Part shown: positions 14,676-61,900 of the stretch, piece after piece
How the letters are laid out: each line of letters begins with the position of its first letter
Numbering within the stretch: the first letter of the stretch is position 1
Source of the DNA: Epiperipatus broadwayi
Taxonomy: Eukaryota > Animalia > Onychophora
Direction: 5' to 3'
DNA: 64,000 nt
NCBI GenBank assembly: GCA_028023455.1
Contig: JAQFVV010000010.1
Location: forward strand, 13,950,001 to 14,014,000
The notes under the pieces: model-generated
Database searches by the model: none
What the model was told of the DNA's origin: nothing
Seen by the model: only the letters and a program-made list of their open reading frames with translations
Position numbers and translations under genes: made by a program

Positions 14676-15390
14676 ATAGTATATACTTAAGTTTGATGTA
14701 ATTAGAGGGGATTTTAACCAGATTTTCAAGCTCCCTTCAGTCATCCACTCCATCTTATACTACAGATACAATTATTTCCAATGTAAGTATTTCATGCTGA
14801 AGGAGCACTCATCAGTTAGTCTGGATCATCATCTTCCACACACATATATATATAATCAGTGCTCAGTTAATATTAAGATAGCAAATCTTCAATCTTTAAT
14901 GGACAGGCTTCAATCTTCTCCCCCCTCCGATTCTTCAACCATTCATATCATTGAAATCTGATGTTGGCATGTTCAAAGTCCATATTGACTGTAAGTCACT
15001 TTAACCCCTCATATGTAGGATTTTATGACCATTTAAATACATAGAAGAAGGATGAGCAGAATATAGACCGAATCTGTGATATTTAAATACTAGTATATAT
15101 ACTTAAACTAGATGTAATTAGAAGGGGTTCGAACTCAGACTTTCAAACTCCCTTCAGTCATCCACTCCATCTTATACAATCAATACACATGACCACATAC
15201 ATGTGAAAAGAATAAATGATCTCCAATACACGTATTTCATGCTAAGCCAGCATTCATCAGTGTGTCTGGATCATCATCTCCCCCCCCCCCCACATATATA
15301 ATCAGTGCTTGGTTTATATTAAGATAGCAAATCTTCAAACTTTACGGACAGGCTTCAATCTTCTCCATTCTCCATCTAACTAGCCATCCA
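14676..15390 (-). mobile_element. Family G hammerhead element, partial tandem (core-to-core 445 nt)
   Basis: Direct repeats 14676-14925 and 15091-15365. Minus-strand cores at 14778-14819 (CTAA CTGATGA GTGCT-CCTTC-AGCAT GAAA TACTTACA TTGG) and 15223-15264 (CACA CTGATGA ATGCT-GGCTT-AGCAT GAAA TACGTG TA TTGG). Confidence 0.8.
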
Positions 15391-16241: not shown

Positions 16242-16274
16242 CTCATAATATACATATAACCATAATTACAAAGA

Positions 16275-16528
16275 AATCAAGTCATATGTCACATGACCTA
16301 ATTTAACAAGTTTGTATTACAAAAGTTATATATAGAGCTCGCAAATAAGCCCTTAACAAGCTTTTCAGAATATCCCCAATCCCAGAACTGATTTCTGCTA
16401 CTGGCTTTCTCAATGAGGTGCTAGGATATTCAAGCACCTCACTGAGGAAGCCAGTAGCAGAAACCGGTCTGGAATTGGAGAAATTCTGCAAAGCTTATTA
16501 AAAGCTTATTTGAGAACTCTATATATAA
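16275..16528. mobile_element. Family B head-to-head fold-back with a hammerhead core in each arm
   Basis: Arms 16326-16422 / 16433-16528 with a 10-nt loop. Plus core 16437-16472: CCTCA CTGAGGA AGC-CAGTA-GCA GAAAC CG GTC TGG. The minus core is mutated. Confidence 0.85.
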
Positions 16529-22100: not shown

Positions 22101-24345
22101 TAAAAAAAATTAATGGATATTAAATAACATTTTTTTAGTATTTTGGGATTAGCGCTATCATGACATAATTGGCCAGCCATATTCTAACTTCGCGAATTAT
22201 TCCAGTACTTTAGGTTTTCATAATAATCACAACTATGATATTTTGCCGTTGGAAACTACAGAAATAAGTTATTAAAAAACCCCAGTATACTTATAAAACA
22301 ATTCAGAAATGTTGTGTCTTGGCTTTGGATCAATCTATAGTTTTTTAAAGTCATTTTTTCATATTAACTTTATTATCTATTCAGTATTAGGGAAATAGTA
22401 AAGGTAAAAAACAGATTTACACACATGTTCGTATACCTAAGTATATGCTTATGCCTACACATCTAATTGAAATTTCAATAATAATTATTTGGCTACCAGC
22501 GTTATAATTTTCATTAAGATAATAAACTTAATTAGATCATTATTTTAGTTATCAAAAACATTTAATGTAATTTGATTTGAAATCATGATATATTAATATC
22601 TGCTTATGAATATTATGATTATTGAAGAATTATGAAAAGTAAAGCTTTTATTTCTTTGGAATAGTTTTGCTACAAGCGGATGACATTTACAAATTTTAAT
22701 TATTTGTAAAATAAATAAATAAATTATAATTTTTTGAAATCAGTCATAAATAATCATAAGCATGCTTCTATTTTCTCTATGATCATTCAGGACAATATTT
22801 GCTTTTGTTTGGGTAAGACTAAAACATCATTTCATTATTATTGATTAGAATAAAAGAAAACCCTTTTATTTTTTTAAAAATATTTCAGTAATTATATAAA
22901 AAGCAAATTTTTGAAATACCAAATTTAATACAATTGATTTTATAAATTAAATTTTATACTCTTCTAAAAAAAATATTTTTTTTTGTTAAAATGCGAAATT
23001 ATAAAACATTGCAGTACAACAATAATTAATATTTAAAAGAAAAAATACTTAGTATATTATAAATGAAATGATAGTTAAAGTTTTGAAAGCGTAGTAAAAG
23101 TAGTAGTTCAGTTTATTTTATTCATCTTTATGGTTCCATCCCATAATATCAAAAGTGTAATATAATATGGCAGTATTTATTTTAAGTTAGTTTTTACAAG
23201 AAATGTCATGAATTATATTCAGTAGTAGTTTTTAAAATATATAATGTGTTGAAATGGTATTATATATCATTATACAATGATTCATTTTTGTTTTAACATT
23301 GAAATTTGATCAATTAAAGTATTTTTTTTTTGTTATATGATAGGCAGAATAATCTTTTTATTATAATTGATAGATATCTTCATATTTGAAGGCAGCGAAT
23401 AATCTAGAAAAACCATTTTAAATCATTATGATTGAGCAGTGCTAGTTGTTGATCATTAATTAGAGTAGTAAAAATAATTTATCTTCTTTAACGCAATATA
23501 TTAATGTAATGTAATATTAATGTAATGTAAACTGAATCACACATATATAATTATGATTTAATAAAATAATGTTGTAGAAGGATTGGACAAAATCCTAAGC
23601 ATGAAAATGGAAACACCAACTAACTTGTCATATTTTTTTATAGTGGATAACATGAAATTGATATCTGTTTCTTAAGCATATCAAAAAAATGTTTGATCCA
23701 TTACAATTTAAAAGAAGTCTAGTTGTTGGTATTCCTGATTAATTGGATTATCGGTATTTAATGGTTCAAATTTTCCAATCCTAAGAATAATGAGTGCTTT
23801 TATTAAAGATAGAGGAATGAAACTTGCTAGAATCATAGTTGAAAGTGAGCGTTTACAGAAAGAGATTAATGATGAACATTATGGATTGTATTCCCCCCCC
23901 CCTTCAAAAAAAATCTCAGTGAAATAAATTATATCAGAAGTCAACCCACATCAGAACACTCCAGCGTCTTCTTAAACAATCCATAATAATCTTTGTAAAT
24001 AAAACATTTATGACCAAATTGCCATTTCGGAATTGCTGATTTATGATATGAACACTAACACAGAAGCAGTGGCACCACAAGCAGAAATGGTGAAGGGTCA
24101 CTGTAACATAGTGAAAAATATAAATATGGAATCATTACTTATATTTTTTTAGCCATTGGAAAAGTGTATTTGGATATCTATTTCATAATATTTTGTTTTG
24201 ACTTTGAATGGATGCCACTTAGGTAATCTGAACATTTTAGTAGACTTGATTCACATATATGGCTTCCGAGATGATAATATTCTCAATTCATATAATGCAT
24301 GCAGTTTAATATTGATTTGTAGAATTTGAGATTGATGTTGTACAT

Positions 24346-24648
24346 AAACAGTGAGGATTGCCAATTCCTCTACAAGCTTTATGGTAAATGCTTAGCCAGA
24401 GCCAGCACTTAAAATATCTCTGTCAGGAACCCCTCCCCAAACCCCTGACACCTCTCTGAGGAGTGCCAAAGCACGAAACCATGGTCAGGGGTTTGGGGAG
24501 GGGTTCCTGACAGAGATATTTTAAGTGCTGGCTCTGGCTAAGCATTTACCATAAAGCTTGTAGAGGAATTGGCAATCCTCACTGTTTATAACTTACAAGC
24601 TTAAGAGATAGGGTCATGTGATCTATGAATTGATCTATGACTTTTATT
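24346..24648 (+). mobile_element. Family C hammerhead element: fold-back insertion with 14-bp TSD
   Basis: Perfect 106-bp arms (24344-24449 / 24484-24589), 34-nt loop, ~59-nt 3' extension; direct repeat TTGATGTTGTACAT at 24332-24345 and 24649-24662. Confidence 0.92.
24450..24492 (+). ncRNA. Canonical minimal type I hammerhead ribozyme, predicted cleavage after C24486
   Basis: ACCTCT CTGAGGA GTGC-CAAA-GCAC GAAA CCATGG TC AGGGGT. All core nucleotides are present, with G10.1-C11.1, a GUC triplet, 6-bp stem I and palindromic stem III ACCATGGT. Confidence 0.92.
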
Positions 24649-27224
24649 TTGATGTTGTACATCTTTTATTTTCTCTTCAATACTTGATTTAAATATTATT
24701 GAATCAGCATACCAGTCTTGAAATCTGAATGAGAAGTCAATATTTCTCTTCTCAAAAATAATATATGTAATTTTTGATGTCAATAGTGAATTTATATCAT
24801 GATAATAAAGGAATTTATTATTTTGCTTAATATCTATGTTCATAAAGATAATTTATTTTTGTACTAATAAAAATGCATATATTATATATATAGTATAATT
24901 TTCAATATTTTATGTATTTGATATTATTTGTATATTTGAAGATCTTAAATAAAACAAACCGGCAGTTTGGTATTTTTAAATTTCAAAAATTATGTTTTTT
25001 TTTTTTTGTCCTTATTTTCTCTAAATATGCTAGATTGAAATTCTATGCAAAAATAATTCTGAAATGTAAAATATGGTTATTAGTTTGAGAGTATTAGTTA
25101 ATTTAAATATCTTGGTAGCTTTTAGATAGAAAGTTGAAAGTAAGAACTTGGAATTGATGTGTAGTTCACATTCTCATATATGGTTAATGAATTTAGAAAG
25201 TTAAATGATAGGGGTTTATTGGTGAAATATTGCTGAAATAGATACAATGAAAACCTATAATTAGGCAAGATATTTCAGGCATTTAAAAAATAGCATTGCA
25301 ACGTATCAAATCAACAAATTAAAAATTAGTTTGTAACACATTTATTATTTATGGATTGGTTTGCAAAATTTAACTTTTTATATTCTATCTTTTTATCCTT
25401 ACCATTAATTTTTTCTGTCCATAGAATGACCTTACTCATTTGCACATGGATATTAACAATGATTTTAAATGAATTTACAGTAGTAATGTAAGCATATCAG
25501 ACCATAGATAAAAGCGGTACAACCTCTATTGTTAAAGGAGGCTGCCTTGACTACACGTTGAGATTGTTGATAGCTTAAAGATTGATTGTTACCATTAACA
25601 GTATAATCTTTATATGAATTACTTCTCAATGTACTTATATAAAATTGAAAAATTTCTACATACCTTTATATGTTCTAATACAGTTGTGTTGGAAATATAA
25701 AACAATTGCGTACACAAAGTCTTGGGCTATCATTCTTTGCATAATTCATTTTCTTACTGATTTTGTCAATTTTTTTCAGTCCAAAAAATTGGCATCATGT
25801 AAATATTAATTTTTCTTACATCCATTGCTTCATATTGACTTTTCTTCACACAAATTATAAGTTCCCAATATAACATTTTTTCGCATAGATAATTTTTTTT
25901 TATTTGCTAAATCATACAAATAAGATTACACCTGCATTTTATAATTAATTTGCTCATTATTGCATAATGTTCTTTAAATATTTTAATAAACTAAGGTAGA
26001 TACAAAATAAAATCTTACAATTTTCTAAAACATTTTGATTTCTTTGCTTATAATTTTTTTTTCATATTTCTTTTATATCTAAGAGCTTACTTATGAACAT
26101 AAAATAATTAAATGTAGTTTATTGAAATTTACTTAACATTTTTCAAAAATCAATTACAATATCATTCTCAGAATTAAAACAAAAATGGCTCCCCCCAACC
26201 CCTCTTTTTTTTCACCATAATGCACTAATTATCTTATTTAAAATATGTGTGATCTTTTTCTAATTAAATCAGCTACTGTTTTTGTTTGAAATAGTGAGGA
26301 AGGCAGATAATTCTGAAAAAAATAAAAATAAAATCAAAATTATCAGTCTTAGATTGACTTCAAATATACTAAACTTCTTATTTTGAATTGAGGCATAAAG
26401 TTTGCACAAAGAAAATATCCATAAGAAATTATTTTTTAAATAAAAATTAATTAGAAAATAAAACCAGATTGTTATTTTTTTTAGTAAGATTATTAAAAAT
26501 AATGCTGTTATCTAATCACTATAATTAATATTAACCTGTTTTTAAACATGAAATTGTAACATATTAAAATCATATATATATATATGCAAATAATAGGTGT
26601 GATATATTTTGAATTATATTATGAGTTGTAATATCTAAGTTGTTTTAATATATTTAAGCAATGAATAATAATCATCAAATTAGTCATAATTTTTATAGAT
26701 TTTTAATATTATCACTATTCTTTGTTTTATTGTCTCTATCCCCTTGAAAACCAATGAATCAAGGATTCACGCATTTAATAATCTTAATAGATCTCAGTAA
26801 ATTATCATTTCAGATTATATTTCTATTTAATTCATCTTAATATATTTTAGCACATATTCTTTTACATTCTAAGTATATTCTTCCAATTTTTCATATTTTT
26901 CCAAGTCATATCTTTATAGCCTCAAATCTTTTGTTTAAAATTTTAACTATATTCTTTCCATAGTCAACTTATGTTCTTTTATTCATTTTTATTGATTGTT
27001 TGACATTGTTGTATTACAAAATAAAACAAAATTTAATCTAATTTTATTTACATGTAATTCTAATATCACTATATATAGTACATATACATTTAAATTAAAA
27101 GCAAAAATCATTTAAGAATAGGATATAGAAAAATAACTGTAAAGGAACTTGGATTCTTCTATACTGAATAAGATCCAAGTGTAAAAGAAATCATTATATT
27201 ACTGGAATACTTATAGCTATAGAT

Positions 27225-36040: not shown

Positions 36041-38065
36041 TTTTATCTATTATTTTTGTATTTTAAAATTGGCACCATAAATTGACTAGACACTTATAGT
36101 TGATATATATGTCACTAGATATTTCTAAAATTAAAATGTTTATCCTTATGTATATATGATATTTAGTATGTGTACATAATATATAAGTGATTAAAAATAT
36201 GAAATATTCAAGTGAAAAATGTTTAACATTTTTACTTAATTTTTTTTTTAAAAAATGACATCTATTTAAAAAATGTATCAGTTTCATAAACATTTTAAAC
36301 AAATGTACAAAATTTCAACAAGTTATATTGAACTTGAATACATTAAATGCCAATTTTTAAAATTAAAAAAAAAATTATACTGCTCTCTAGCTAGTTAATA
36401 AATAAACAAATAAATACAGATTTTTCAACTTCAGTAAAAGCATTTAAAAAGTATATTTGCTACATTTTTATATACATGACAAATGGAAATTTTTTTGAGG
36501 AAAGCAAGTTATTTATTTTTGTTGCTGATTGACTGCTCCATTTTATTTATTTTCATATCCCTTTTACAAAGTTTCATTGATAGCAGAATGTGATAATGTG
36601 TCCTTAAATATATGAAAGTTTAGCATTACCATTTTGTATTAAAATATCTTTTATTTGAAAAGTTTTTTAGGTTTTATAAATATTATAAACTTTATTTCTG
36701 AATTTTTGGATTATTAGTTAATAATAGTTAGGAACCAATTAGAGAAGAGGATAATTTATATGCCAAAAGTGTAGGCAGAGTTTCTTCTTCATGCATTTCT
36801 GATTTATCAGAAGATATATCCTTTTTTTTCAGTTTATTCTCTATTTGATTCGTGATTTATTACATTTTTATTTATTTGATTCATAATTTTTTATATTTTT
36901 AATGGAAAATAACTATTTTTTTTTTTTTTTAGATAATCATTTATTAATATCAAAATTGTTGGGTATATGCTGCATTTCATAAAATCACTCAAATGAAAAT
37001 GAATTTGTCAATATATTTTTTTTCAGAAAAGTATTGTTGTAAGGAAATGATAAGAATACAATAATTAGATTCATTTGATATTGAAAGCTTTACTCCATTA
37101 AATTATAATTTTTTGAAATTTTAATAAGCTAGATTGTCTTACTAAAAAGAAAAATAAAGGAAGATATATATGATTAAAAATTAGATTTTTTTTTTTTTTT
37201 ATAATTCCTCTGTAAATAAAAAATTTACAAAATAATTATTATAATGTATCATTAGTATTTTGATTTCTATTGCCATTTCAATTTTTTTTAAATAATTGAA
37301 TTCATTGATTCTAAGTTTGAAGCCAAGATGCCTTTATTTTCTTTTTATCATATACTTAATATTGATAAGATATTTTCTAATTATTTTTTCTATACAAGTT
37401 AATCACCATTAATCTTAGATTTTTCATCATTGATGAATTAAAAATTTTGCTGGATTAATCTTTTCTCAGGGATTAAATGTAATTAAAACTAGGTTTAAAA
37501 TGTTTGATTTATTTGTTTGGTATATGCAACCTTTACATTGAATAGAGTTGGTAGCAAAATTAAATTATTTTTTTGTAATTAATATTTAAAGTATTTATAA
37601 AAGTAATTAAAACATTATTTTAAAGATATATTTAAATTGTATTAAGAAAAAAACAACAACATATAAACCTAAGCCTCCAATTAATATCAAATATGTAACA
37701 TAAAATTATATATTTTTATTAATAAAAATATCATTGAAATAAATGGAAGTATATTTGATGTAAAAAATAAGCTTTGAAATTAAATTAAAATTTACTTTTT
37801 GTCTTGACAAATTTAAGAGTTATGCAATAATAAAACAATATACTGTTTACTCTCATTATACATCTCTTGAGTTTAAAGTACTAAGCTCCTAAAAACTATT
37901 AATTCTAAACATCACATGATCACCATTTCCATACTAGCACATAATTGTTGTAAACAAAGGCAAAACTCTCCATACAGTAGTGCCACCCTGTGCCAAACAG
38001 AGTAATCAATGGATGCCAGAAGGCTTGTGCATAAAATCCCTATCTAGTGCCTACTCATCCAATAT

Positions 38066-38105
38066 CCCCAGTTTAGTTTCTGGCTTGTGGCCATCATCAG
38101 TGAGG
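38066..38105 (-). ncRNA. Family A hammerhead with mutated cleavage triplet
   Basis: CCTCA CTGATGA TGGC-CACAA-GCCA GAAAC TA AAC TGGGG (GTC replaced by AAC). Confidence 0.7.
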
Positions 38106-38596
38106 AGCCTTGGATCTGAGAGCACTGCACCTAGATCTTAGGATCTAATGCAACCCTCCAGCAGCCACCTTTTACTCTACTTTACTACAAAACTATGAGA
38201 ATGAAATTGAAAACCTTGTTAATATCTTCAATCTAAGCTCAATAGCCTATATAGTCATATGGGTCTGAACTCAATTCAGCACCCATACATTTTGGTGTCT
38301 TTGGCTCTTAAACAACCATGTGGTTATCATGTGATGTTTAGTAGTTTAACACCAATCCTGCCTAATGGGATAGTGGTGGCTATGGTTGTTTAAGAGCCAA
38401 AGACACCAAAATGTATGGGTGCTGAATTGAGTTCAGACCCATATGACTATATAGGCTATTGAGCTTAGATTGAAGATATTAACAATGTTTTCAATTTCAT
38501 TCTCATAGTTTTGTAGTAAAGTAGAGTTAAAAGGTGACTTCTGGAGGGTTGCATTAGATCCTAAGATCTAGGTGCAGTGCTCTCAGATCCAAGGCT

Positions 38597-38635
38597 CCTC
38601 ACTGATGATGCCACAAGCCAGAAACTAGTCTGAGG
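38597..38635 (+). ncRNA. Family A hammerhead, near intact (1-nt deletion in stem II), predicted cleavage after C38630
   Basis: CCTCA CTGATGA TGC-CACAA-GCCA GAAAC TA GTC TGAGG; perfect 5-bp stem I. Confidence 0.8.
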
Positions 38636-39189
38636 ATATTGGATGAGTAGGCACTAGATAGGGATTTTATGCACAAGCCTTCTGGCATCCATTGATTACT
38701 CAGTTTGGCACAGGGTGGCTCTACTGTATGGAGAGTTTTGCCTTTGTTTACAACTATTAATTCTAATGTGTATTGCATAAACAGTGGAACCACAACTCCG
38801 CAGTATCTAAATACATAACTTCAATTATAAGCTTGCCAAAGAAAAATGTAAACAAACAATTGTAAATAAACAATTTTAAAAAAAAACATTAAAATTCTAT
38901 AATTTAATATTTCAGCAGCATTATTATTTCTCTGAGCACCATTCAGGATTATATTTACATGAATAAATTTCTTTGGTTTATATTGAAAGCTCATATCTTT
39001 TATTTTTTCCCAAATTTGATGTGCTACATTTTGCATAATAAATTATTTACTAAGGGAAAATACTTAAATATAATATTGCCTTAAAAGAAATAAAGATGGA
39101 ATTTCTTAGATTGATCTATTGTTTCTAAAAAAAAAAAGTTGTTAAAAAAAATAAATCGCCCCAAGTGTTATTTTGAAAATAAGTTTTTG

Positions 39190-43050: not shown

Positions 43051-43302
43051 CTATACGTCTTGTGTATTTATGATTACATTAGTCTGAGTTAAAGCTTATA
43101 TTTTTATAATTAGATTAAAAGATGTACAGAATTACTAGCTGGGGACTCATTGCTATTTAACTATTACATTTTTTTTCCAGATAAATATATTCACCATTTA
43201 TCTTGTTTCAAGAAATTTACATAATCATAATTTTATTTGGTATCCAAATAATTTTAGCATACAGCAAAGATTCTGATTAAAGTGGGTTTAAAATGTGACA
43301 TT

Positions 43303-43411
43303 GTCAAGCATTGGTGGTTGAGAGGTCAGCGATAGCTGCTTCACAAGCAGTTGTCCCGGGTTAGGGGTTCGCTTCCCGGCTGATGCTATGACACTTGAGG
43401 AAAAAAAAAAA
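43303..43411 (+). mobile_element. tRNA-Gly-derived SINE, intermediate subtype
   Basis: GTCAAGCATTGGTGG...GGTTCGCTTCCCGGCTGATGCTATGAC + A-tail; TSD GTGACATT (43295-43302, 43412-43419). Confidence 0.85.
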
Positions 43412-46400
43412 GTGACATTTGGTCCCAAAGCTGTTTAGTGGGTAATGTGGATCAGGGTGGTCACACTTTTTCAAGGCAAGGGTTATTTGTAATTTCCTTC
43501 AAGTATAGTGACTCACCACATATATTACAGGCATGGGTTTAAAATATCTTTAAATGTTTTCATTTTTTGGAAAGGATACACTGGCATCAGGTATATAATA
43601 TGCATATTTTGCGTTCATCATTGTGAAGAAAAACTGTTTTTCCCATTCTGTTTCTAAAATTGTCTTTCTTTTCTTTGCAATTCTTTCAGATGTTATACCG
43701 CAATCTTAAAATATGAGAAAATATTAATTTTTCCAGATAAATAAATTCTATGCAGCTATTATAATAAAAAAAATATAGAAGTTAGCCTTACAACTAATTG
43801 AACATATTCAATGCTTTCGGTTGCACCTTTATGTTGCACAGTGAATGTATTTGAGCCAATAAATTTGTAATTGATGTGTGCATTATCATACATTTTAATG
43901 TTGCGAATGTCATCTAACCCATTCATTGTCAAATACCAACTACATACAGCTGTCTCAATTATGAAGAGCCAATTTTTATTTATAGTAACAATATGTATGT
44001 GAAAAAATATATTTTATGCATATCTGTATAACCTAGGGTAATGTAGCATCGATTACAGTTCCTTTTTTTTGAAATTTAGGCCATCACTCCAAAATGTCTT
44101 GGCAGGCTATCCATTGGTGGACCACGATCGATGTCTTGCCCACTCCTATGTAGATAATAATGATTGCTATATATATAATAAGAATATTTGCATATAGATT
44201 TGATCTCTTTTAATAATTTAAAAATATATATACAGGAACAAAAAATTAATAAAAAAATACAATACTGTACAATATGGCATGGTTTTTAAAATGTGTTTAT
44301 TTATTGATACAAATATTAAAAAAAGTCATATATAAAAAAGAAATTACTTTAAATAGACAAAAATATATATTTATAATTAATGAAAGCAGTTAAATTTTGA
44401 AAGGAAATAGAAACAAAGAAATTTAATTCAAATTAATATTAGTGTTACAGAATTTTGAAAATTAGGATGAAACATATTAAGAAAAAACAAAACAAAGTTA
44501 TTATTTTATTTTTTATTTTTGCTTGCAATATAAAAAGATATATAGATGAAATACACAGGCTTATATATACCTGTGTCTATATATGTAATAGACAGGGTAT
44601 GGTGTGGAGAGTGGTGGGTCATGTGAAAGTCTGTGCTCATACCCCGTTTGCAATATGAACTAAAAAGTTAAAATTTCATTTTTTTTTTACCCATTTCTAA
44701 TTTTTTATTTTGCTTATTATTATTATTTTTTCAATAGCTTCTAGATGAACCATGAATTTTGAGAAGGCGGCCCATATATAATCACTTTTCATTATAATTT
44801 TTTTTGAATTATTCTCATTGTGTTCACTGACCAATTCCAAACTATAAATTTTGTAAATTAATGATGCTATGTATTCACTATTTGATATGAATTCAATCGT
44901 TTCTATTTTCTTGATTGCAGTTTATCATCTGAAAAAATTAAGGACGGTATGTATGACCTTCTGTAGTCAGAATATCATTATATACAGTCATGACAATATT
45001 TTCTTGGATGTACCACTCACAGTATAACTGGCTTTTCAAGAGATTTAGATATCATATAATAATACGGGGAGCCTGCCATTTCACCTTACGCTGTAAGGAT
45101 TAGTACAATTATTTACTTGAGTTTCTGTGCACTTATAAGAAAGTGTGAAGTTATTTTTGTATTTTTTAACTACTTAGCAATATGTATATATGTACATAAT
45201 ATAATAAACATATCTGGGTATATTTAGAAAGCAAATGTAAACCATTATAAAATAAAGTTTAGTGAAATTTTTTTTAAAAATACCAATATATATATAATTA
45301 TTTAATAAGAGATACGGCTTTAACAAAAAGGCTTCTAAATTTTATAAATGGAAATAAATATTTTAAAAGTTGGTGTTTATGTTTCTTCCTTATGAGGATT
45401 TCCTATGATGGTATTCAGGAAAACTATTTGTTTCAGAATTAAACGATACTATTTTTTTGTCATTTTTATTTCAATACTATAAATATTAATTATACACTTT
45501 TTGTATGGTAAATTCTTCACAGAGTATTATATAGAAATCCATATGAATTGTTTGTCAGCTCAAGTTGGTAGTAATTTTCTTTGAATATTTTCTTCAAATA
45601 ATTTGTTAATGCATCTTATTTTTGCAGTCATATTCTCTAGTCATTTTCTGCCCAGAAGCCGATTGATATAAACGAAAATCTCTTTTTTTAATCTATATAA
45701 AAATAGTAAAAAAACATTTCCATAAATTTTATATGTGCATATTTGGATTCTAATAGAAACATGTGAAAAGTCAAAAATCTATTTATAACCCAAAGAAAAG
45801 TTTTTGCTATTATTAAATACATAAAGAGTTCTGGGTATTGAATTTTTTAAAAATAATATTGAAGTTAAATATTACTGACTTAATCAAAAGATTATTAGTT
45901 GTTTACAGGTCTTTGAAATTGTTCTTATAGCCAATCAGGTTTTTTTTTAATATCCCTTTTCTCCATCTCAACATTTAAATGTGTGTGGTAAGGTAATAAA
46001 TGTTAGATATGCCAGAGATTTAAATGTTAGTTAAGCTAATACTGTAAAATTAGATAAACTACCGGAAATTGATTCTTTGTGAATTTTCAATTTAATTTTA
46101 TCACTATACTTTTTGTTTTTAAAATCATTAATATCACATTAAGAAAGTTTATTAATAATTTTATTAGCACATTGAATAGTTTCAGAACCATTGTACATTT
46201 TATATATATCTGCAAGTGTTTGAGATAAATTTTTAAAAACTTTTAATTTACACTGGCATTAATTTAGTTTTGTGATTTGTTTTAAATTATTGCCTAATTT
46301 TTTTAGTACACTCTCAAAATTTTTTGTCGTAAGACTTATATTCTTCATTTTTTTGAAGACTCCAAGATTATTTTAAATTATGTGAGATTTTGTGATTCGT

Positions 46401-50849: not shown

Positions 50850-51858
50850 TTTTTTTTTCAGAAATAAAATTTATTAGCTAAAAAGATACATGAATAAAAG
50901 CGTTTATATAAACTTGAGTTTTGACTTAAATATTGATGCTAGACATTATTATCTCTTTATACAAGTGAAACTGAGGAGTATTTAATTTTCTTAGGACAGG
51001 TTGACGCCGGCCCAGGATTCAGTATGTAATCTATTGGGTGCCAGAAGTCGATTTCTGTCACGAAAGTTTGTCAAAATTTTGATAAAGGTGTCTCTGACAT
51101 TATTATCTGAGCACCTGAAGATGTGCTTGCATCTGGTGATGCTGAATGCAAACGTGAGAAATATGGAAGTTCTGATGGTGGAAAAAACTCCCATCTTGAT
51201 AGCATTTGGATATAGAGGGAGTATCTGTAGTCAAAGGACACCTGTTGGCAGATGTAGGATCTAAGTGAGTTGAAATAAGGACAGGAATACAAAAGATAAG
51301 TAATAGTTTCGTCTACAGTTGAGCACAGCTGACATAGCGTATTGAGCTTGGCAAATCCTCTTCTTGTGACCAAGAAGTGATTTGTAGTTAGGGAGAATAG
51401 GTTTAATTTTATCAGAAAGTCTATGTACTTGGACTCGATGTACCAGTTCTTTGATTTACATATCAGTGATTTGTTATTTAGCCCTAGTGATTGTTGAGAT
51501 GCAGTGAGGTTTGGGTATCTTAATTTATACATCTGCCAATATGTTTTCTTTGCATCTAAGATAGGTTTTGTTAATATTATCGTATTAGTGATGTGCTTCC
51601 ATAGCTCTGTCAGTCACTCGCTACAAAATGGTGGTGGGGTGTCCGTTGGATTTACTGGAATAAATGGTTCTTATTCCAGATATCTGTGATATGTGGATCT
51701 TATCACGCCCATCGCTTTTTGAAGGAAAAGTGTGGATACGGAATGGAGGCCTAACCCTTTGGCTTATGTATTTTGAATATACTTATAGCAACGACTTTGC
51801 CTTTCCATAAAAACCAGGAGCATAATGAGTTCATTGCAGTTTCAAAGCCTAGAACATA
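50850..51858 (-). mobile_element. 5'-truncated L1/Tx1-like LINE
   Basis: FLWKGK..., GLGL and CQLCSTVDETITYLLYSC (zf-RVT-like); AATAAA + poly(A); TSD ATGTCATTAA(G/A)CTTT at 50835-50849 and 51859-51873. Confidence 0.8.
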
Positions 51859-52535
51859 ATGTCATTAAACTTTAAAGTAACTTTTTAACAAATAAAATTG
51901 GAATCCCACCTTTATTTATGGTCTATTATATTTATATAGATACTAAAGATTGCAACCATAGAGATTGAAAAATTATTGATACAAAGAAGCTTAAATAAAT
52001 CCCCTTAAACAGACAAATATAACTTGTTCTGAAATGCAGACTAATAAGTAACCAATTATAACATTACAAACCACAATTATAATATTGAATGTAAGTCTTA
52101 TTTGAAAATAATTTTGTTACAGGATGATAAATTATGTGAAATTTATAATTATATACATTTTATAAAATTAATAAAAGCATATAAAAGCGATTTATCTGCT
52201 GACAAAGAAGCTGCAAAAACCAAAACAATTAAATAGGCTGAGCGCTTTCGAGGTTTTCCCTCATATTCATGGCCAACATAAGTTATAAATCATTTATGAT
52301 GTTGCTAACTAATAAAATATGCAAATGTGAAAGCAAATTAGTTTGTCCATTTTTTTGAGATAGAAAAACACGTGTCGCGTCTATTGATGGAATTGTTATC
52401 ACTGATAACAAAATACGCCTCTTTGATTTTTCTTTTGCAGTCATTGGCTTCAGAGCATACTATCTTGGAATTGCCGGATTCAAACACATGGCCAGCCTGC
52501 TTCTCATGTTCGAAGAATATTGAGGGAAAAAAAAA

Positions 52536-53378
52536 ATCAAGTCATACATCACATGACCTAATTTAATAAGCTTGTATTACAAATGTAATATAATGAGCAT
52601 GCTAATAGTTCTGAACAAGTTTTACCGATAAATGCCACAAGAGAAAGTTTTGAAAAATCTATCTAGAATTATCCCTATTTCCATATCAGTTTCAAGCCAC
52701 TGGTTATCCTCAGTCAGATACTAGGATATTCGGACACTAAATCTGAAATACCAGCTCAAGCTCAGCGTTTATCAAATACTTAACTATTAAGTAGAAAATT
52801 TGAAATTTTCAGACGTCTTTATGACTTCAAATCCAGCTATCTAACTTAAATAGCTATATGGGCCGAACAAACTTCAGCTACACCATATATTAGTAATATA
52901 ATATCACCAAAGCCCCGAAAACCAAACTATAATAGTAAAAAAAAGTCAAATCATTTGCAATACAAGCTTATTAATTTAGGTCACGGGCTATATGACTTGA
53001 TTCTTTTACTATTATAGTTTGGCTTTCAAGACTTTGGCAATGATATTTTGCGAAGACTATTAATATATGGTGTAGTTGAAGGGTGTTCAGGCCCTTATAG
53101 CTATTTAAGTTAGATAGCTGGATTTGAAGACATAGATGTCTGAAAATTTTAGATTTTTTACTTAATGGTTAAATATTAGATAAATGCTGAGTCTGAGCTG
53201 GTATTTTAGATCTAGTGCCTGAATATCCTAGCACCTCACTGAAGATAGCCAGTAGCTTGAAACTGGTTTAAGGATAGAGATAATTCTAGATAGAGATTTT
53301 TAAATGCTTTCTCTTGCGGCATTTATTGGAAAAGCTTGTTTAGAGCTATTAGCACGCTCATTATATTACATTTTATAA
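52536..53378. mobile_element. Family B large fold-back (~380-bp arms), degenerate hammerhead in each arm
   Basis: Arms ~52570-52952 / ~52994-53378. Cores: minus ~52681-52718; plus 53234-53273 (CCTCA CTGAAGA TAGC-CAGTA-GCTT GAAAC TG GTT TAAGG). Confidence 0.88.
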
Positions 53379-56108: not shown

Positions 56109-57064
56109 CTTTATTTAAATAGCTTACTGCAAGGGCAAGCATGGTTCTACAGAATAACGAGATGACGATACACATTAGTGTAATCAAATGCCCCTCCTTG
56201 AGAATTTATGGTTATATAGTTATTGATATAACAAAATTATACTGCATTATTCTAAAGTTGTTGTTTTTCCCGATCACATTCATTAAAGTTTACATTCAAA
56301 AGAACAAGCTTTGGATTTATGGATTTTACTCTATATTGTAGATTAATGGCTATCATTTTGGGCTTTTCATATAAAGCCAATAAGTTATATATATAAGTGT
56401 AAATTTCTTTTGATTCCAAGTGCTTTTTTAAAGATTTTGGCCAAAATTATTAATTAATATAAATGGAGTAAATTGAAAAACTCAACTAAACTTTTTTTTT
56501 TTGAAAGTAAATTTGACTAATACATTTTTTGAGTTATAGCTGCAAAAACAATATTGTTGTTTATCATTAGAAAGCAAGTCATCTAGCTCACATTTAATTT
56601 GCATTTTTAAAATAATAATTTATCATATACAATTGTGTTGCCATCTCTGTAAGCATGTATAATTAATGGATATACCATGGTATCAAAACCCTCAGTTTAT
56701 TTCTGGATTGGCTCTCTTTGTCTTGAAGCTTTTTTTTTCATTACAATCATTTAGTTAAGCTAATAATTTAAAATTTTTAAATACCCCAGATTTTTAGACT
56801 TGAGACTATTTTTTTGTTTAATTGAAAATCTGACAAATCTGTAATTATGAATAAATTTCTAACATCGAGCTTTTATTTAGCCATAGAAATATATATATTT
56901 ACTACAGAACCAGAATACTTTAGGGATAACAGGTGGTAATGCTAAAATAGCATAATGGAATAATAGGTGGTTCAAAGATCAGTGTATATATTTCCAGCCA
57001 AAGAGGGTAAACAAGTCATAAAATTATCTGGAGCGCTGATTCAGGCAAACAATACCTATTGATT

Positions 57065-57123
57065 ATAAATAGTCAAAATAAGAGTCAAAGATCCAATTCA
57101 TAGATCACATGACCCTATCTCTT
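57065..57123 (-). mobile_element. 59-bp 3'-terminal fragment of family C with 14-bp TSD
   Basis: Reverse complement matches 24601-24652; flanked by AATACCTATTGATT at 57051-57064 and 57124-57137. Confidence 0.85.
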
Positions 57124-58230
57124 AATACCTATTGATTCTCTTATTTGCAGAGGTGGCTTTGAAATTACAAGAGAGATATGTTAGTCGAAATTGTTGCCAA
57201 TCCTGTTTAGCAGTTTTAGAATGACATGATTTTCTGAGCAAATAATATGATTATTAATATCTGCTCATAATTATTGAACTTCATAGTCCCTAAATTGTGT
57301 TACAAAATTAAAATAAATAGACAAAAAACCAACAAACACTTGTATTCCTCATATATGTATAGTCCCATATTGTAATCAGTTTATTCTTTTAAAACTTGTT
57401 CCTTCATTGAATCGAATTGTTCATCAACTTGCTGCCCAATGCTTCACTACTTTATGACCATTGTCAGAGGGCTTCTAAAAATACTGTACAACAAATAAAA
57501 ATCTTACACATTTTAAAATATATTTATTTATCATTCATACTATATATATTATAATACATTAAAAACTATAAAATTAAAATTTTACAACCATCATGAATAA
57601 TCATGTTCTTTAATTAATAAAAAGACTATTTATTACAGTAAAATTCAAAATTCACTTATAGGTGATTAAAAATGAGATTCTATTTCTCTCCTATTACAGA
57701 GTGAATAAGTTTGTACAATTTATTAAATTATAATTTAAAGCCCTGATTTTAGCATGGTGAATAAAGGTTGGCTTATTAACAATAAACTCTAAGCATAAGT
57801 GGTTCACTTGTGCCTTTAAACTCATGCTCAAGGGTTAACACACATAAATTCATAAAAGTGCATGACCTGAGATTTGTTACCTTATGTAATCTTTCTAATT
57901 TTTTTTTTGTTGACTTTTAAAATTTGCTATTCATTTTCCCTCTTATATTATTATTTAAATTTTATATAGATTTTTTTTTTAATTAGTAAGTCATTATTCT
58001 TCATCCTTCCCCTCTCCAGTCTGTCCATTTTATTTGAGATTGTTTTTTTTTTATTCCTTATATATAACTATTCTTTAATTAATCATTCTTATTAATTTCC
58101 TATATTTTGCATCATTTTAATACTGCTATAATAATGTTAACACCCATTTTTTTGTATGCTTATTTATACTGGATACAGTGGTGTTATTAAACTTATATTT
58201 TAGCTAATGGATTAATCTTTTACTACTACT

Positions 58231-58999: not shown

Positions 59000-61900
59000 A
59001 GTAAAAAAATATTCTAGAACTGAATTTTGCAATGACTATATAAACTAAGTTGTGAATTACAAATGCATTCACATATAGAACATTCTGGTCTGTTTTTCTA
59101 TTTGATATTTTGTGATGTTGTCTTTTAACTTTTTCTACAGAAAACTTGTCTTTATGCAGGATTTCAACACCATATCTAATTGTAAACTTTCTAGAGTATC
59201 TATCTTTCTAATGAATACAATCAATATTGTACTTCTTTAGATGTTTTTACATCTCCCATGAAAATCATGCTCAAACTCATAAAACATCCTTTTAGGAAGT
59301 CTTATATTTTTCATTCTTTTTACATTTCCTAGCCAAAGAAGGTGTGATTAAAAATTTTAACATCCTATGGATGCAATATAAAGACATTAAAAAAGTTTCA
59401 ATTAAGGATGTCCTACACAATTTTTAAAATATAAAGGCAAAACCATAAAACCAATCAAAATATACTTCACCTTGTAGTTATAATTATGATGGAATTTATT
59501 ATTGATAAAATTTCACCATCTTTGGATTGAAAATATAAAAAAGAAAGAATAAAATGAGCCTTTGATTCCCTATCAATGCAATATAAGGACATTAGATAAG
59601 TTTCGTTTAAGGATACCCTGCAAAGTTTTAAAATATAATGGTTACATCTCATTATCATACAATAAATTTGGTAAAATAACTTGTATATATATAGCTAATT
59701 TAGTTACAGTAGTTATTTGATAGTGAATTATCCTATTTTTTAAAAATGGCGGCAGCATATTGGGAACTATGCTGCTTATCTTGGCATCGATGTCCATCTT
59801 TCTACTTATAAAACTGCCAAGAAATTACGACTGGTTATGTTTTCAAATTGATAATTATCCAAGCTAAAAGCTGTTGAGAATTTTTTTCTTTCACTGGCTA
59901 CTAAAGAACATGAATTTTTTGAACATTAATTATTAAAACCAATCTTTATATGTTGCGTTCAAAATATTGAATAAATTTTGGTCATTTTTTGAACTGGCAA
60001 TCATCAGAAAATTGTAAGTCCAGAATTCAAAAAAAGATGATAGTTCTTGTCTTAACTTCTAATGGCATTCTCAAATTAAAAGTTCTATCATCAAATCTGT
60101 ATTACATTTTGATTTCTATTTTATAAAGCTGCCTGCAATAGTTCCAAAGACTTAAAAATCAAAAGGAATGTTGAAGGAAATATATATCCTTGTTTAGCAT
60201 CAGTTTTCATTTCAAATGCCACAGATTTTCCACTTATAGTGTTAACATTTCATGTCATTCCATAATGTATAAATTATATAATAGGAATAAATTTTGTTGA
60301 AAAACCAAATAATTTCGAACAATAACATGGACACTGAATTGAGTTAAATGCTTTGACCAAATCAATAAAAGCATTATATAAAGCACCTTTAATGATCCCT
60401 ATACCACATTAAAACTGATTGCTTTCAGCTATGACTGGAAATGACCTATTCAACAAAATCCTTAAAAATACCTTTGTTGTAATGGATGATAGTAATATTC
60501 ATGATAATTATTACAATCTTGCCTCTTCCCTATATTTTTAAAAATTCGGAACAGTAGAAGATTCTTGAGATCAGGAGGTGCAACTTTATGTGACCATATA
60601 TTTCTAAAATATTCTAGTTTTTTTTAAAGCTAATACATCACCAGTATATTTTTAAAACTCCTTCAGGTATTTCATTAGGACTTGCAACTGTACTATTTAA
60701 TGTTACTAAGGTGGATATCTTTATCTAAATTCAATTAGTAGTTAAAAAATAAACATATCTTTAAAAGTCATTATGTCAATTTTTGTATCATTGTTCAAAA
60801 GATGATAAATATATAATTAGAAGTCATCATCTCACTTCTTGTATCATTGTTCAAAAGATGATCAAAATACCTTTTCATCTATTCAAAATATTATTGCCAT
60901 GTAAGAGTGGATTATTGATAGTATTTTTTAGATCCATATATTGCTTTCTGTGCATCAAAAAAATGTCTTAAGTGACCACAATGAGGAAATATCTGTATCT
61001 CCTTTGCAGCTTTAAGTCATTAATCATTTTCAAGCTTTCTTGGCAGTTATTGGACTTTTGTCTTTAAATCTCTATTTATCATGAAATTGTATTATTTATT
61101 CTGCCAAATTCAAAATTCTATGTTTCCTTTTATGAATTACTAAAAAAAAGATAATTGTCACAAAAACTTTTTTAGTGAACTCAATTAATAAACTTATATA
61201 TATATAACAACTTCTTAAGAGAATTCCACATCTCAGTAATGTGATCAGCCTGAAGTCCAAATTAGGATAATTTTCTAAAGAATGAACATCAGCTTTCTTT
61301 TCTTTTTTCACATGTTAAAGCGTTGACCGGGAAGCGAACCCGGACCAGCTACTTGGAAGGCAGCTATGCTAATCACTAGGCTGCCAACGCTTGACAAACA
61401 TCAGCTTTTTTGTGAATGGGATAAAATGTATATTTTTTAATGCAATTATTATTTAAACTTGGAGTGCAGTATCTATGATCTGTTTAACAATCCATGCTTA
61501 TAAATGCGCATGAATTTCTATTTGGACTTCTAACTTAATATAATCTATTAAATGCCATTGTTTTGAGTCTGAATGTATCCATATTCCTTATAACAGTGTT
61601 TGTGATAGTCAATCTATGTGTTGTACATAAATTCAATAGTAACAAACCATTTGAATTCACAGTATCAATACCATTATTTTCAACAACTTTTGACCATGAC
61701 TAATATTTGTACGAACATATATGCATTAATATCTAAGAACAAAAAAATTATTTTTAAGGGCATGCTGTAATAATGCTATCCAGTAAGTAATGGGAATTTT
61801 TCTTCTTTGAATTCTTTAAATCTAAGGTTGGAGCATAAGCAACAATAAAATGAGCATTAATATCTTGATGCAAGGCTAGTTTTAACGTCCTTACTTTTTC

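Follow-up and report, generated by a model that had tools for sequence, protein, structure and literature searches.

Here, we describe a fold-back insertion in the genome of Epiperipatus broadwayi, located in a 64-kb window (the whole stretch of DNA analysed). With a probability of roughly 60%, it arose when a hammerhead element that is very abundant, non-coding, and of retrozyme or SINE type was recently retro-inserted; the reverse transcriptase and GIY-YIG endonuclease would most likely have been supplied in trans by a Penelope-like element (PLE), and two cDNAs would have been joined at a 7-nt complementarity. The fold-back is real and is a clear further example of the known PLE-type insertion pattern, here in an element that is short, does not code for protein, and resembles a retrozyme or SINE. 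The original prediction of a retro-insertion with Penelope-type fold-back anatomy and a sequence-intact type I hammerhead is retained, except for its proposal that the fold-back was made at the ribozyme cleavage site.

The two arms of the palindrome (24344-24449 and 24484-24589) are 106 nt long, 100% complementary and separated by a 34-nt loop, exactly as had been predicted, and because the bases next outward and inward are unpaired, the limits of the arms are exact (Table 1). The palindrome is thus perfect over 106 bp, but the newly made duplication comprises 99 nt plus a 7-nt overlap, with the innermost 7 bp being present in ordinary copies of the element. The proposed 14-bp target site duplication (TSD) is likewise found at both sides, with a chance of about 5e-8 for one 14-mer match at a single fixed offset. 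TTGA at the start of the right TSD, however, also continues the normal 3' end of the family, so that the true duplication is 10-14 bp. On the other side, 2 nt are common to the left arm and the TSD. The shared TTGA could be a priming microhomology. The tail lacks the last 8 nt of the family (CTATTTAT) and contains a private 12-nt duplication at 24619-24642; its 3' module also occurs in other hammerhead-like families of the window. No direct repeat of the unit, i.e., neither a partial tandem nor a pLTR, was found at 24346-24648.

Table 1 Features of the fold-back insertion and of a second family copy in the window
Feature	Position	Strand	Description
Insert	24346-24648		303 bp, GC 43.6%
TSD, left copy	24332..24345	.	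TTGATGTTGTACAT; final 2 nt (AT) overlap the left arm
Left arm	24346..24449	-	Inverted, 5'-truncated, tail-less element copy; exact palindrome from 24344
CCCTGAC junction microhomology	24443..24449	+	7 nt, common to the left arm and the canonical sense unit 5' of stem I
Type I hammerhead ribozyme	24450..24492	+	RF00163, 34.3 bits; core pattern match
Right arm	24484..24589	+	Sense copy 3' of the ribozyme core; begins GTCAGGG, complement of 24443-24449
3' tail	24590..24648	+	59 nt, one side only; bears the 3' module
TSD, right copy	24649..24662	.	TTGATGTTGTACAT; first 4 nt TTGA
Second family copy	57052..57137	-	60-nt 5'-truncated 3' end (57065-57124) between 13-bp TSDs AATCAATAGGTAT
3' module blocks			ACAAGCTT / AGGTCATGTGA / TATGA.TTGA

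As judged from its sequence, the ribozyme at 24450-24492 is an intact, predicted self-cleaving type I hammerhead, in agreement with the earlier claim of an intact ribozyme in the loop. The Rfam covariance model RF00163 (Hammerhead_1) matches the + strand at gathering level (34.3 bits, with the gathering score set at 34, a marginal pass). E was 5e-7 when 401 nt were scanned and 7e-8 for a stretch of 51 nt; a whole-window Rfam scan at default settings missed this match, which was recovered by local scans. CUGAGGA, GAAA, and GUC were aligned with a posterior probability of ~1, and every core position is present. The three helices, with helix I open, consist of stem I (ACCUCU/AGGGGU, one G-U pair), helix II (GUGC-CAAA-GCAC), and a palindromic stub as helix III (ACCAUGGU), and the predicted scissile bond is 24486|24487. 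The active hammerhead fold is not favoured by thermodynamic folding alone, and in a transcript of the locus both the GUC site and stem I's 3' strand would be sequestered within the 106-bp hairpin. The exact pattern of the ribozyme core had no match in metagenome contigs or viral contigs. Rfam microRNA-precursor matches over 24393-24540 and over other palindromes, all far below the gathering score, were rejected because hairpin models respond to long perfect hairpins.

In contigs from public runs, summed word depth was 1-3.6 million across the element as compared to ~26 in the flanks. Near-identical canonical copies are present in two related organisms, and contigs from RNA runs contain element sequence. 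Canonical copies are non-palindromic and carry CCCTGAC immediately 5' of stem I; they match the locus from 24443 on and have a different sequence upstream, as apparent from loose contig ends at 24443 in several runs, including those of related organisms. This canonical upstream segment is absent from the 64-kb window. A subfamily with CCCTAGC, without the 7-nt complementarity, also exists. The second family copy, 5'-truncated and flanked by its own TSD, supports retro-insertion and ends with the canonical ...TTTTGACTATTTAT. In 22 contigs, the sequence diverges after 24591, the mirror of the outer end of the left arm, which is therefore a recurrent tail-less terminus of the family, while 33 contigs end at the tailed terminus; these two terminus classes fit two start sites of reverse transcription. 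Further loose contig ends lie at 24628 and 24652.

This anatomy closely follows what is described for PLEs. Their insertions are 5'-truncated, are often joined at the 5' end to an inverted copy that is 5'-truncated as well, and bear a one-sided tail of 30-40 bp (PMC8557442), their inverted junctions show palindromes and a 15-bp overlap (PMC3846280), and a PLE protein, when purified, cuts both strands of the target and extends them, with reverse transcription starting at two internal positions by which the tail is delimited (PMC11167929). In vitro support for both-strand priming comes from this one vertebrate PLE (PMC11167929). The locus shares with PLE insertions (Evgen'ev and Arkhipova 2005, via PMC8557442; PMC3846280; PMC11167929) the TSD, the 5' truncation and an adjacent inverted copy with its 3' ends outward, and also the overlap or palindrome at the inverted junction, the one-sided tail and the position of the hammerhead in the repeated part; all elements of the TSD, inverted truncated copy and one-sided tail pattern were found. 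Unlike a PLE, however, the locus has neither a reverse transcriptase (RT)/GIY-YIG frame nor a pLTR, its unit is a non-coding sequence of a few hundred nucleotides, and its ribozyme is a canonical type I rather than the minimal PLE variant. Its tail of 59 nt (67 nt canonically) exceeds the published 30-40 bp, which counts against the PLE-driven retro-insertion preferred here. Without an RT/GIY-YIG frame, the insert is non-autonomous and not a PLE proper. No PLE reading frame was found in the window, whose four ORFs of at least 120 aa gave no RT or GIY-YIG domain above threshold, and no partner element sharing the 3' module was identified among the window's ORFs and domains.

Anatomy, TSD, copy number, canonical family sequence, and 7-nt overlap are observations; which enzyme acted, in what order the steps took place, and that two templates were used instead of one, we infer as follows. 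Both target strands would be nicked, ~14 bp apart. The bottom strand might then prime cDNA synthesis near the RNA's 3' terminus, 8 nt in, via the 4-nt TTGA match, thereby giving rise to the sense copy with its tail, and the top strand might prime at the internal start site of the family via a 2-nt AT match, producing the tail-less inverted copy. The two antisense cDNAs would finally be joined at the self-complementary CCCTGAC/GTCAGGG flanking the ribozyme core, which would leave the core as the 34-nt loop. Upstream of the TSD, the target resembles the 3' end of the element at 6/10 positions; this stretch was considered as a primer and dismissed, since the resemblance is marginal and a primer would have to lie on the other side of the nick.

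Related arrangements are known from other retroelements. In L1 twin priming, both target strands are reportedly primed, which is said to yield an inverted 5' segment within a TSD-flanked insertion and a microhomology join, with the inverted piece reportedly being a different, more 5' part of one RNA. Unlike in twin priming, where inverted and direct segments differ and adjoin, an identical 106 nt is found on both arms here. Metazoan non-LTR retrozymes (Cervera and de la Pena 2020, PMC7229834; bioRxiv 10.64898/2026.07.22.740005) resemble the element in their type I hammerhead with a helix I of 6 bp, a helix II of 4 bp, and a short palindromic helix III. The element is also retrozyme-like in being a short, highly repeated non-coding unit without LTR, PBS, or PPT, with a GC content below 50%, a TSD of more than 4 bp, and presence in RNA, and a dependence of retrozymes on PLEs has been proposed (PMC7229834; bioRxiv 10.64898/2026.07.22.740005). 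Retrozymes are, however, defined by head-to-tail tandem arrays and circular RNAs, whereas the locus consists of a single partial unit and an inverted copy, and no head-to-tail tandem repeats of 150-450 bp were found at the locus. Sm-alpha of schistosomes and other hammerhead SINE-like repeats are likewise dispersed, high-copy and non-coding with a type I hammerhead (PMC4209133); Sm-alpha differs from the element in sequence. In Schistosoma mansoni, ribozyme pairs occur on opposite strands 100-700 bp apart (PMC4209133), and no base-level description of an inverted junction in Sm-alpha-type repeats was found in the literature consulted.

The original prediction placed the inversion point at the ribozyme cleavage site. 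The right arm indeed starts at G24484 of the GTC triplet, but the predicted cut is at 24486|24487, so that the inversion point lies 3 nt upstream of it. The reverse complement of 24484-24490 is CCCTGAC, and because ordinary copies carry this complement of GTCAGGG, the junction is a 7-nt microhomology. This intrinsic inverted repeat explains the coincidence with GTC without cutting. Moreover, the sense copy is continuous across the GUC site, and its template was therefore uncleaved there. Judging from these sequence relationships, ribozyme cutting is unnecessary to explain the position of the turn. The other fold-backs in the window turn ~20-45 nt 3' of a hammerhead-like core, at the 5' end of the element, or inside an extended stem I, and short overlaps are present at their two resolvable junctions. 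Given the 7-nt repeat, the uncut sense copy, and these turns elsewhere, the notion that the fold-back was generated at the ribozyme cut does not find support in the form proposed. An unrelated fold-back, at 37909-38751, is flanked by a 15-bp TSD and bears a tail, of 41 nt, on just one of its arms. Ribozyme or ribozyme-like cores lie in the loop of 2 of ~7 fold-backs of the window, in two unrelated families. Turns at the ribozyme were counted in 2-3 of ~7 fold-backs, as compared to roughly one expected by length, and no enrichment can be claimed from these numbers. The comparator was the larger family of the window, with copies at 38 kb, 6 kb, and 47 kb. Its cores fit a simple hammerhead pattern and gave no Rfam hammerhead match, even in local permissive scans; they are hammerhead-like only and possibly represent minimal PLE-type variants with a palindromic ACUAGU.

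The main competing explanation is that a single cDNA snapped back on itself. One cDNA would have been copied from the RNA, beginning at the 3' end of the latter and passing the uncut ribozyme as far as the position opposite 24443. The 3'-terminal GTCAGGG of this cDNA would then have paired with the CCCTGAC lying 34 nt back in the same molecule, and the RT would have copied the cDNA into a perfect palindrome that the top strand joined later via the AT overlap. When the nascent cDNA (24443-24540, reverse complement) was folded as DNA, the minimum-energy and centroid structures alike placed the 3'-terminal 7 nt in precisely this helix, and self-priming has been proposed for the palindromes that PLEs show at their inverted junctions (PMC3846280). 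The two arms do not differ from each other and have in common the minority alleles 24384G/24549C and 24351G/24582C, which fits one template slightly better than two, unless a single young master locus supplies all RNA; as the outcome would then be the same, we judge these alleles weak as proof of a single template. Snap-back leaves unexplained, however, why the left arm stops at a terminus common to many copies, i.e., the one at which the 22 contigs diverge. In addition, one contig from the public runs joins 24449 to 24492 with GA between, suggesting an inverted arm with sequence that its sense arm lacks, which would require a second template. We thus consider snap-back unlikely, albeit a serious contender. 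Clearly less probable is that the ribozyme cut itself set the inversion point. In that case, an RNA cleaved behind C17, with AGGGG... at its 5' end, would have yielded the inverted arm as a run-off cDNA, with no more than CCCT (4 nt) linking it to the sense cDNA. The 7-nt ambiguous zone contains the expected run-off position 24446|24447, and in a second family, 4 of ~12 5' ends lie 9-20 nt 3' of the predicted cut. Yet no 5' end of family A falls exactly at the predicted cut, and the best-supported loose contig ends show no 5'-end pile-up at 24487. The 7-nt complementarity accounts for the position on its own, the sense copy passes through the uncut site, other turns lie elsewhere, and in the only in vitro PLE system, abolished hammerhead cleavage left insertion unaffected (PMC11167929).

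Explanations outside retrotransposition fare far worse. Perfect palindromes are a known artefact of long-read data, and no contig was shown to span the entire structure, as might be expected if the palindrome had arisen from a chimeric fold-back read or a mis-join. The structure, however, is internal to its contig, is bordered by unique sequence and a 14-bp TSD, has a one-sided tail as at other loci in the window, and the flank contig of the home sample breaks where a branch between insertion and empty alleles would be located; an assembly artefact is therefore very improbable. Hardly worth entertaining is a DNA-level element, whether MITE or foldback transposon, bounded by terminal inverted repeats, although long inverted repeats plus a TSD would suit it. 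Between the right arm, which stops at 24589, and the TSD, which starts at 24649, lie 59 nt, and hence the inverted repeats are not terminal; ordinary family copies are non-palindromic and 5'-truncated with TSDs, and TSDs of 13-16 bp exceed the usual length for DNA transposons.

The preferred retro-insertion of two joined cDNAs appears recent, as originally proposed. The arms have accumulated no mismatch, and the flank contig of the home sample ends exactly at 24345. Logan contigs cannot span a perfect palindrome inside a high-copy repeat. Contig geometry is consistent with an empty-site allele carrying a single TSD copy in another sample and probably also in the home sample. The empty site for which the original prediction suggested a check is in accordance with this geometry, which makes the insertion look both recent and polymorphic.

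How PLEs build tandem and inverted structures and what purpose their hammerheads serve are open questions (PMC8557442, PMC11167929). The locus is a young and clean case in this respect, with 0 mismatches, both junctions resolved to the base, and a likely empty allele, and its 7-nt self-complementary join and two distinct outer ends match the prediction of the in vitro model of both-strand priming from two start sites. It is tempting, if rather improbable, to view the hammerhead as the hinge of Penelope-type integration, in which oppositely primed cDNAs are joined either by the 5' end that self-cleavage produces or by the complementary sequences closing stem I. If true, this would give the long-unexplained ribozyme of PLEs and retrozymes a role in head-to-head insertion structure, and with tens of thousands of copies the genome could test the idea statistically. 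The value of the locus lies in pointing to a genome with a very abundant and apparently still active family, which may be used to separate both-strand priming, snap-back, and run-off.

The focal insertion at 24346-24648 is real and well preserved, and it is probably still polymorphic. The palindrome, its 34-nt loop and the 14-bp target site duplication (TSD) of the original prediction are all borne out by the exact complementarity of the two arms and the twofold occurrence of TTGATGTTGTACAT. The arm limits are sharp, as the adjacent bases, both outward and inward, do not pair. Given the base composition, the probability that two 14-mers at a set distance agree by chance is ~5e-8. The 303 bp between the TSDs have a GC content of 43.6%, compared with 27.9% for the window. 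Numerous Rfam microRNA-model matches over the palindrome, all far below threshold, were dismissed as hairpin noise.

Features of the focal family, the larger family and a shared 3' module (window coordinates; fold-back turns by approximate locus)
Feature	Position	Strand	Details
Left arm, focal insert	24344-24449		106 nt, exact reverse complement of right arm around 34-nt loop
Right arm, focal insert	24484-24589		106 nt, exact reverse complement of left arm
TSD copies, focal insert	24332-24345 and 24649-24662		TTGATGTTGTACAT
Second focal-family copy	57065-57124	minus	60-nt 5'-truncated 3' end, ending TTTTGACTATTTAT; own 13-bp TSD
Ordinary copy, run X6 record 17	matches 24443-24652		one difference
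Ordinary copy, run X7 record 29	matches 24443-24524		zero differences
Unrelated hammerhead-like fold-back	37909-38751 (with TSDs 37894-38766)		843 bp; 15-bp TSD AACTATTAATTCTAA
Larger-family turn	38 kb		at element's probable 5' end
Larger-family turn	2.3 kb		~20-45 nt downstream of core; 4-nt AGGC overlap
Larger-family turn	32.5 kb		~26-37 nt downstream of core
Larger-family turn	47.9 kb		asymmetric
Larger-family turn	6.1 kb		inside extended stem I; 6-nt ATCCAA/TTGGAT overlap; core left in loop
Shared 3' module sites	24570-24665, 57055-57150, 16262-16345, 52520-52610, 52940-53030		

A type I hammerhead is recognised by Rfam model RF00163 at plus-strand positions 24450-24492 with 34.3 bits (gathering score 34), a motif missed by the default whole-window scan. 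The alignment comprises CUGAGGA, a 4-bp helix II (GUGC-CAAA-GCAC), GAAA, a palindromic helix III stub and GUC, together with a 6-bp stem I (ACCUCU/AGGGGU) that includes one G-U pair. Judged by its sequence, the motif follows the canonical type I layout of metazoans, in which helix III is too short to act except as a dimer (PMC4209133). The description of the ribozyme as intact holds for its sequence only, including the full core; the transcript of the whole insert is predicted to fold into a 106-bp hairpin (-231 kcal/mol) in which stem I's 3' strand and GUC are buried. In the sense unit alone, the minimum-energy RNA fold pairs CCCUGAC with GUCAGGG (24443-24490) in preference to the active fold. 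This helix, which would hide the cleavage site and compete with stem I, may act as an off-state of the ribozyme; it is absent from about half of the canonical, i.e., non-palindromic, contigs.

Comparison of Logan contigs from four public runs with window positions 23900-25100 shows that the focal family is extremely abundant, with a summed word depth, which is not a copy number, of 1-3.6 million across the insert and ~26 on either side of it. Near-identical ordinary copies are present in two related organisms, and sequences of the family also occur in RNA runs of two organisms. Ordinary copies agree with the window from 24443 onward only, and their upstream sequence is roughly ...TAGATCTAGTGTCTGAACCTA, unlike the left arm; on the 3' side, they are 8 nt longer than the focal copy and end in ...TTTTGACTATTTAT. 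The 5' truncation, the 13-14 bp TSDs and the non-palindromic ordinary copies mark the family, at the sequence level, as a target-primed retroelement rather than a DNA transposon. Core-pattern scans of public metagenome and viral contig collections yielded no further copies of the focal ribozyme element. In RNA run X5, contig depth over the 3' tail (24556-24637) was 4-9x that of the remaining element, an excess not seen in the DNA run, although contig depth is a poor measure here and the 3' module is also present in other families.

The two arms of the insert are identical, and its ribozyme has kept a CpG at 24474 that is lost in 41% of the family by depth in the Logan contigs. Record 9 of X5, a run on a different sample of this organism, is 200 nt long (depth 3.87); its first 147 nt correspond to 24185-24331, the remaining 53 nt would fit 24649-24701, and X5 depth in the bin 24679-24719 is 2.17, equal to 3.87 x 23/41. 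Judging from the geometry of the contig table, this agrees with the prediction for an empty site carrying a single TSD copy. In the sequenced animal's own sample, the left flank contig stops exactly at 24345 and the right flank contig has 16 extra unplaced letters past 24649, which equals the count of 31-mers that only an empty allele would have (31 - 14 - 1). If this reading of the geometry is correct, the insertion is polymorphic, the sequenced animal is probably heterozygous for it, and an assembly artefact is unlikely.

Insertions of Penelope-like elements (PLEs) are strongly 5'-truncated, often carry an inverted 5'-truncated copy at their 5' end and have a 30-40 bp tail at one end only (PMC8557442). 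Their inverted junctions show overlaps and palindromes, read by Arkhipova and co-workers as self-priming (PMC3846280). In work with a purified PLE protein, both target strands are cleaved and extended, and reverse transcription begins at two internal sites whose spacing equals the tail (PMC11167929). The focal locus fits this signature point by point, as the 3' ends of both copies face outward and the right end is tailed whereas the left is tail-less. The tail-less end is a terminus common to many other family copies (22 Logan contigs diverge at 24591 and 33 at the tailed end), and short matches are present at both outer junctions (AT left, TTGA right). The unrelated 843-bp fold-back shows the same plan, with arms 96-99% alike, a 41-nt tail confined to the left (inverted) arm and a 62-nt loop resembling the element's true 5' end.

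Turn points in the window are variable, and their excess at the ribozyme (2-3 of ~7 fold-backs) is not significant. In the larger family, whose reference 38320-38751 has its hammerhead-like core at 283 and its predicted cut at 311|312, the cores match a simple pattern only, with no Rfam hammerhead match in local permissive scans. The core lies in the loop of two fold-backs from two families, the focal insert and the 6.1-kb locus, as is to be expected, since a type I hammerhead is by design closed by sequences complementary to each other. None of ~12 larger-family ends lies exactly at the predicted cut. The 5' or inner ends at 2350, 6174, 32636 and 56006 correspond to reference positions 312-331, 9-20 nt downstream of it, which could hint at cleavage-shortened templates or could reflect the usual bias to short 5'-truncated copies. 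At 52530-53375, a related family forms a complex cluster that is both inverted and tandem. The right portion of this cluster (about 53190-53270) shows homology to the upstream segment of the focal family's ordinary copies and holds a decayed hammerhead (CTGAAGA core, GTC to GTT). A possible partial tandem lies shortly downstream of the 14.5-kb hammerhead-like core, in the form of long direct repeats at 14731-14925 and 15148-15370, ~417-446 bp apart.

The original prediction that the fold-back was generated at the ribozyme cleavage site is better replaced by a built-in inverted repeat. The right arm does begin at the GTC triplet, but the inversion point is not the cleavage site, as the predicted scissile bond is 24486|24487 and the arm thus starts 3 nt before the cut. 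CCCTGAC (24443-24449) belongs to the ordinary copies and pairs exactly with GTCAGGG (24484-24490), so that the junction is a 7-nt microhomology inherent in the element, which explains the apparent start at GTC without RNA cleavage. We favour a route in which each target strand would have primed an antisense cDNA and the two cDNAs would anneal by their 3' ends through CCCTGAC/GTCAGGG, given the in vitro PLE data and the fact that the left arm stops at a terminus recurrent in the family. Less favoured is a single cDNA that snapped back on itself through this repeat, although the minority alleles shared by the two arms (24384/24549 and 24351/24582) lean slightly this way. In the predicted DNA fold of the nascent cDNA, the 3'-terminal 7 nt lie in precisely the CCCTGAC/GTCAGGG helix, whether the minimum-energy or the centroid structure is taken.

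Run-off on a second, ribozyme-cut template, joined through CCCT alone, would fit the sequence equally well at base level, and the 4 of ~12 larger-family 5' ends beyond the predicted cut are in its favour. Its probability is nevertheless low, since the 7-nt repeat accounts for the turn position without cutting and the sense copy is continuous across the cleavage site, so that its own template was uncut there. The literature searched contained no paper linking a hammerhead to an inverted junction. Copies with CCCTAGC, which is not complementary to GTCAGGG and replaces CCCTGAC in about half of the canonical contigs, provide a natural control.

Other retroelement-like features of the window include a 16-bp direct repeat (TTTTTCCAGATAAATA, 43172-43743) around a 540-bp segment (43188-43727), a candidate tRNA-headed SINE insertion with a tRNA-Val-like sequence at 43307-43388 (Rfam 33.2 bits, also found by ARAGORN). 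A second tRNA-like Rfam match (61319-61390, minus strand, 32.7 bits) has no ARAGORN call. A 153-aa ORF (51071-51532, minus strand) with a weak, sub-threshold zf-RVT match (19.8 bits, cut-off 27.5) may be a retroelement remnant.

The 64-kb window has no PLE reading frame, and a PLE partner is accordingly inferred rather than demonstrated. The focal insert is a non-autonomous, hammerhead-carrying, Penelope-dependent or retrozyme-like element of a known kind, in standard fold-back configuration. Its 3' module is conserved in three hammerhead or hammerhead-like families of the window (alignment A2; blocks ACAAGCTT, AGGTCATGTGA and TATGA.TTGA), and a similar GTGATCATGTGAT occurs in the tail of the 38-kb family. 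The common module suggests that one enzyme serves all three families, and it may be the recognition site of one common reverse transcriptase.
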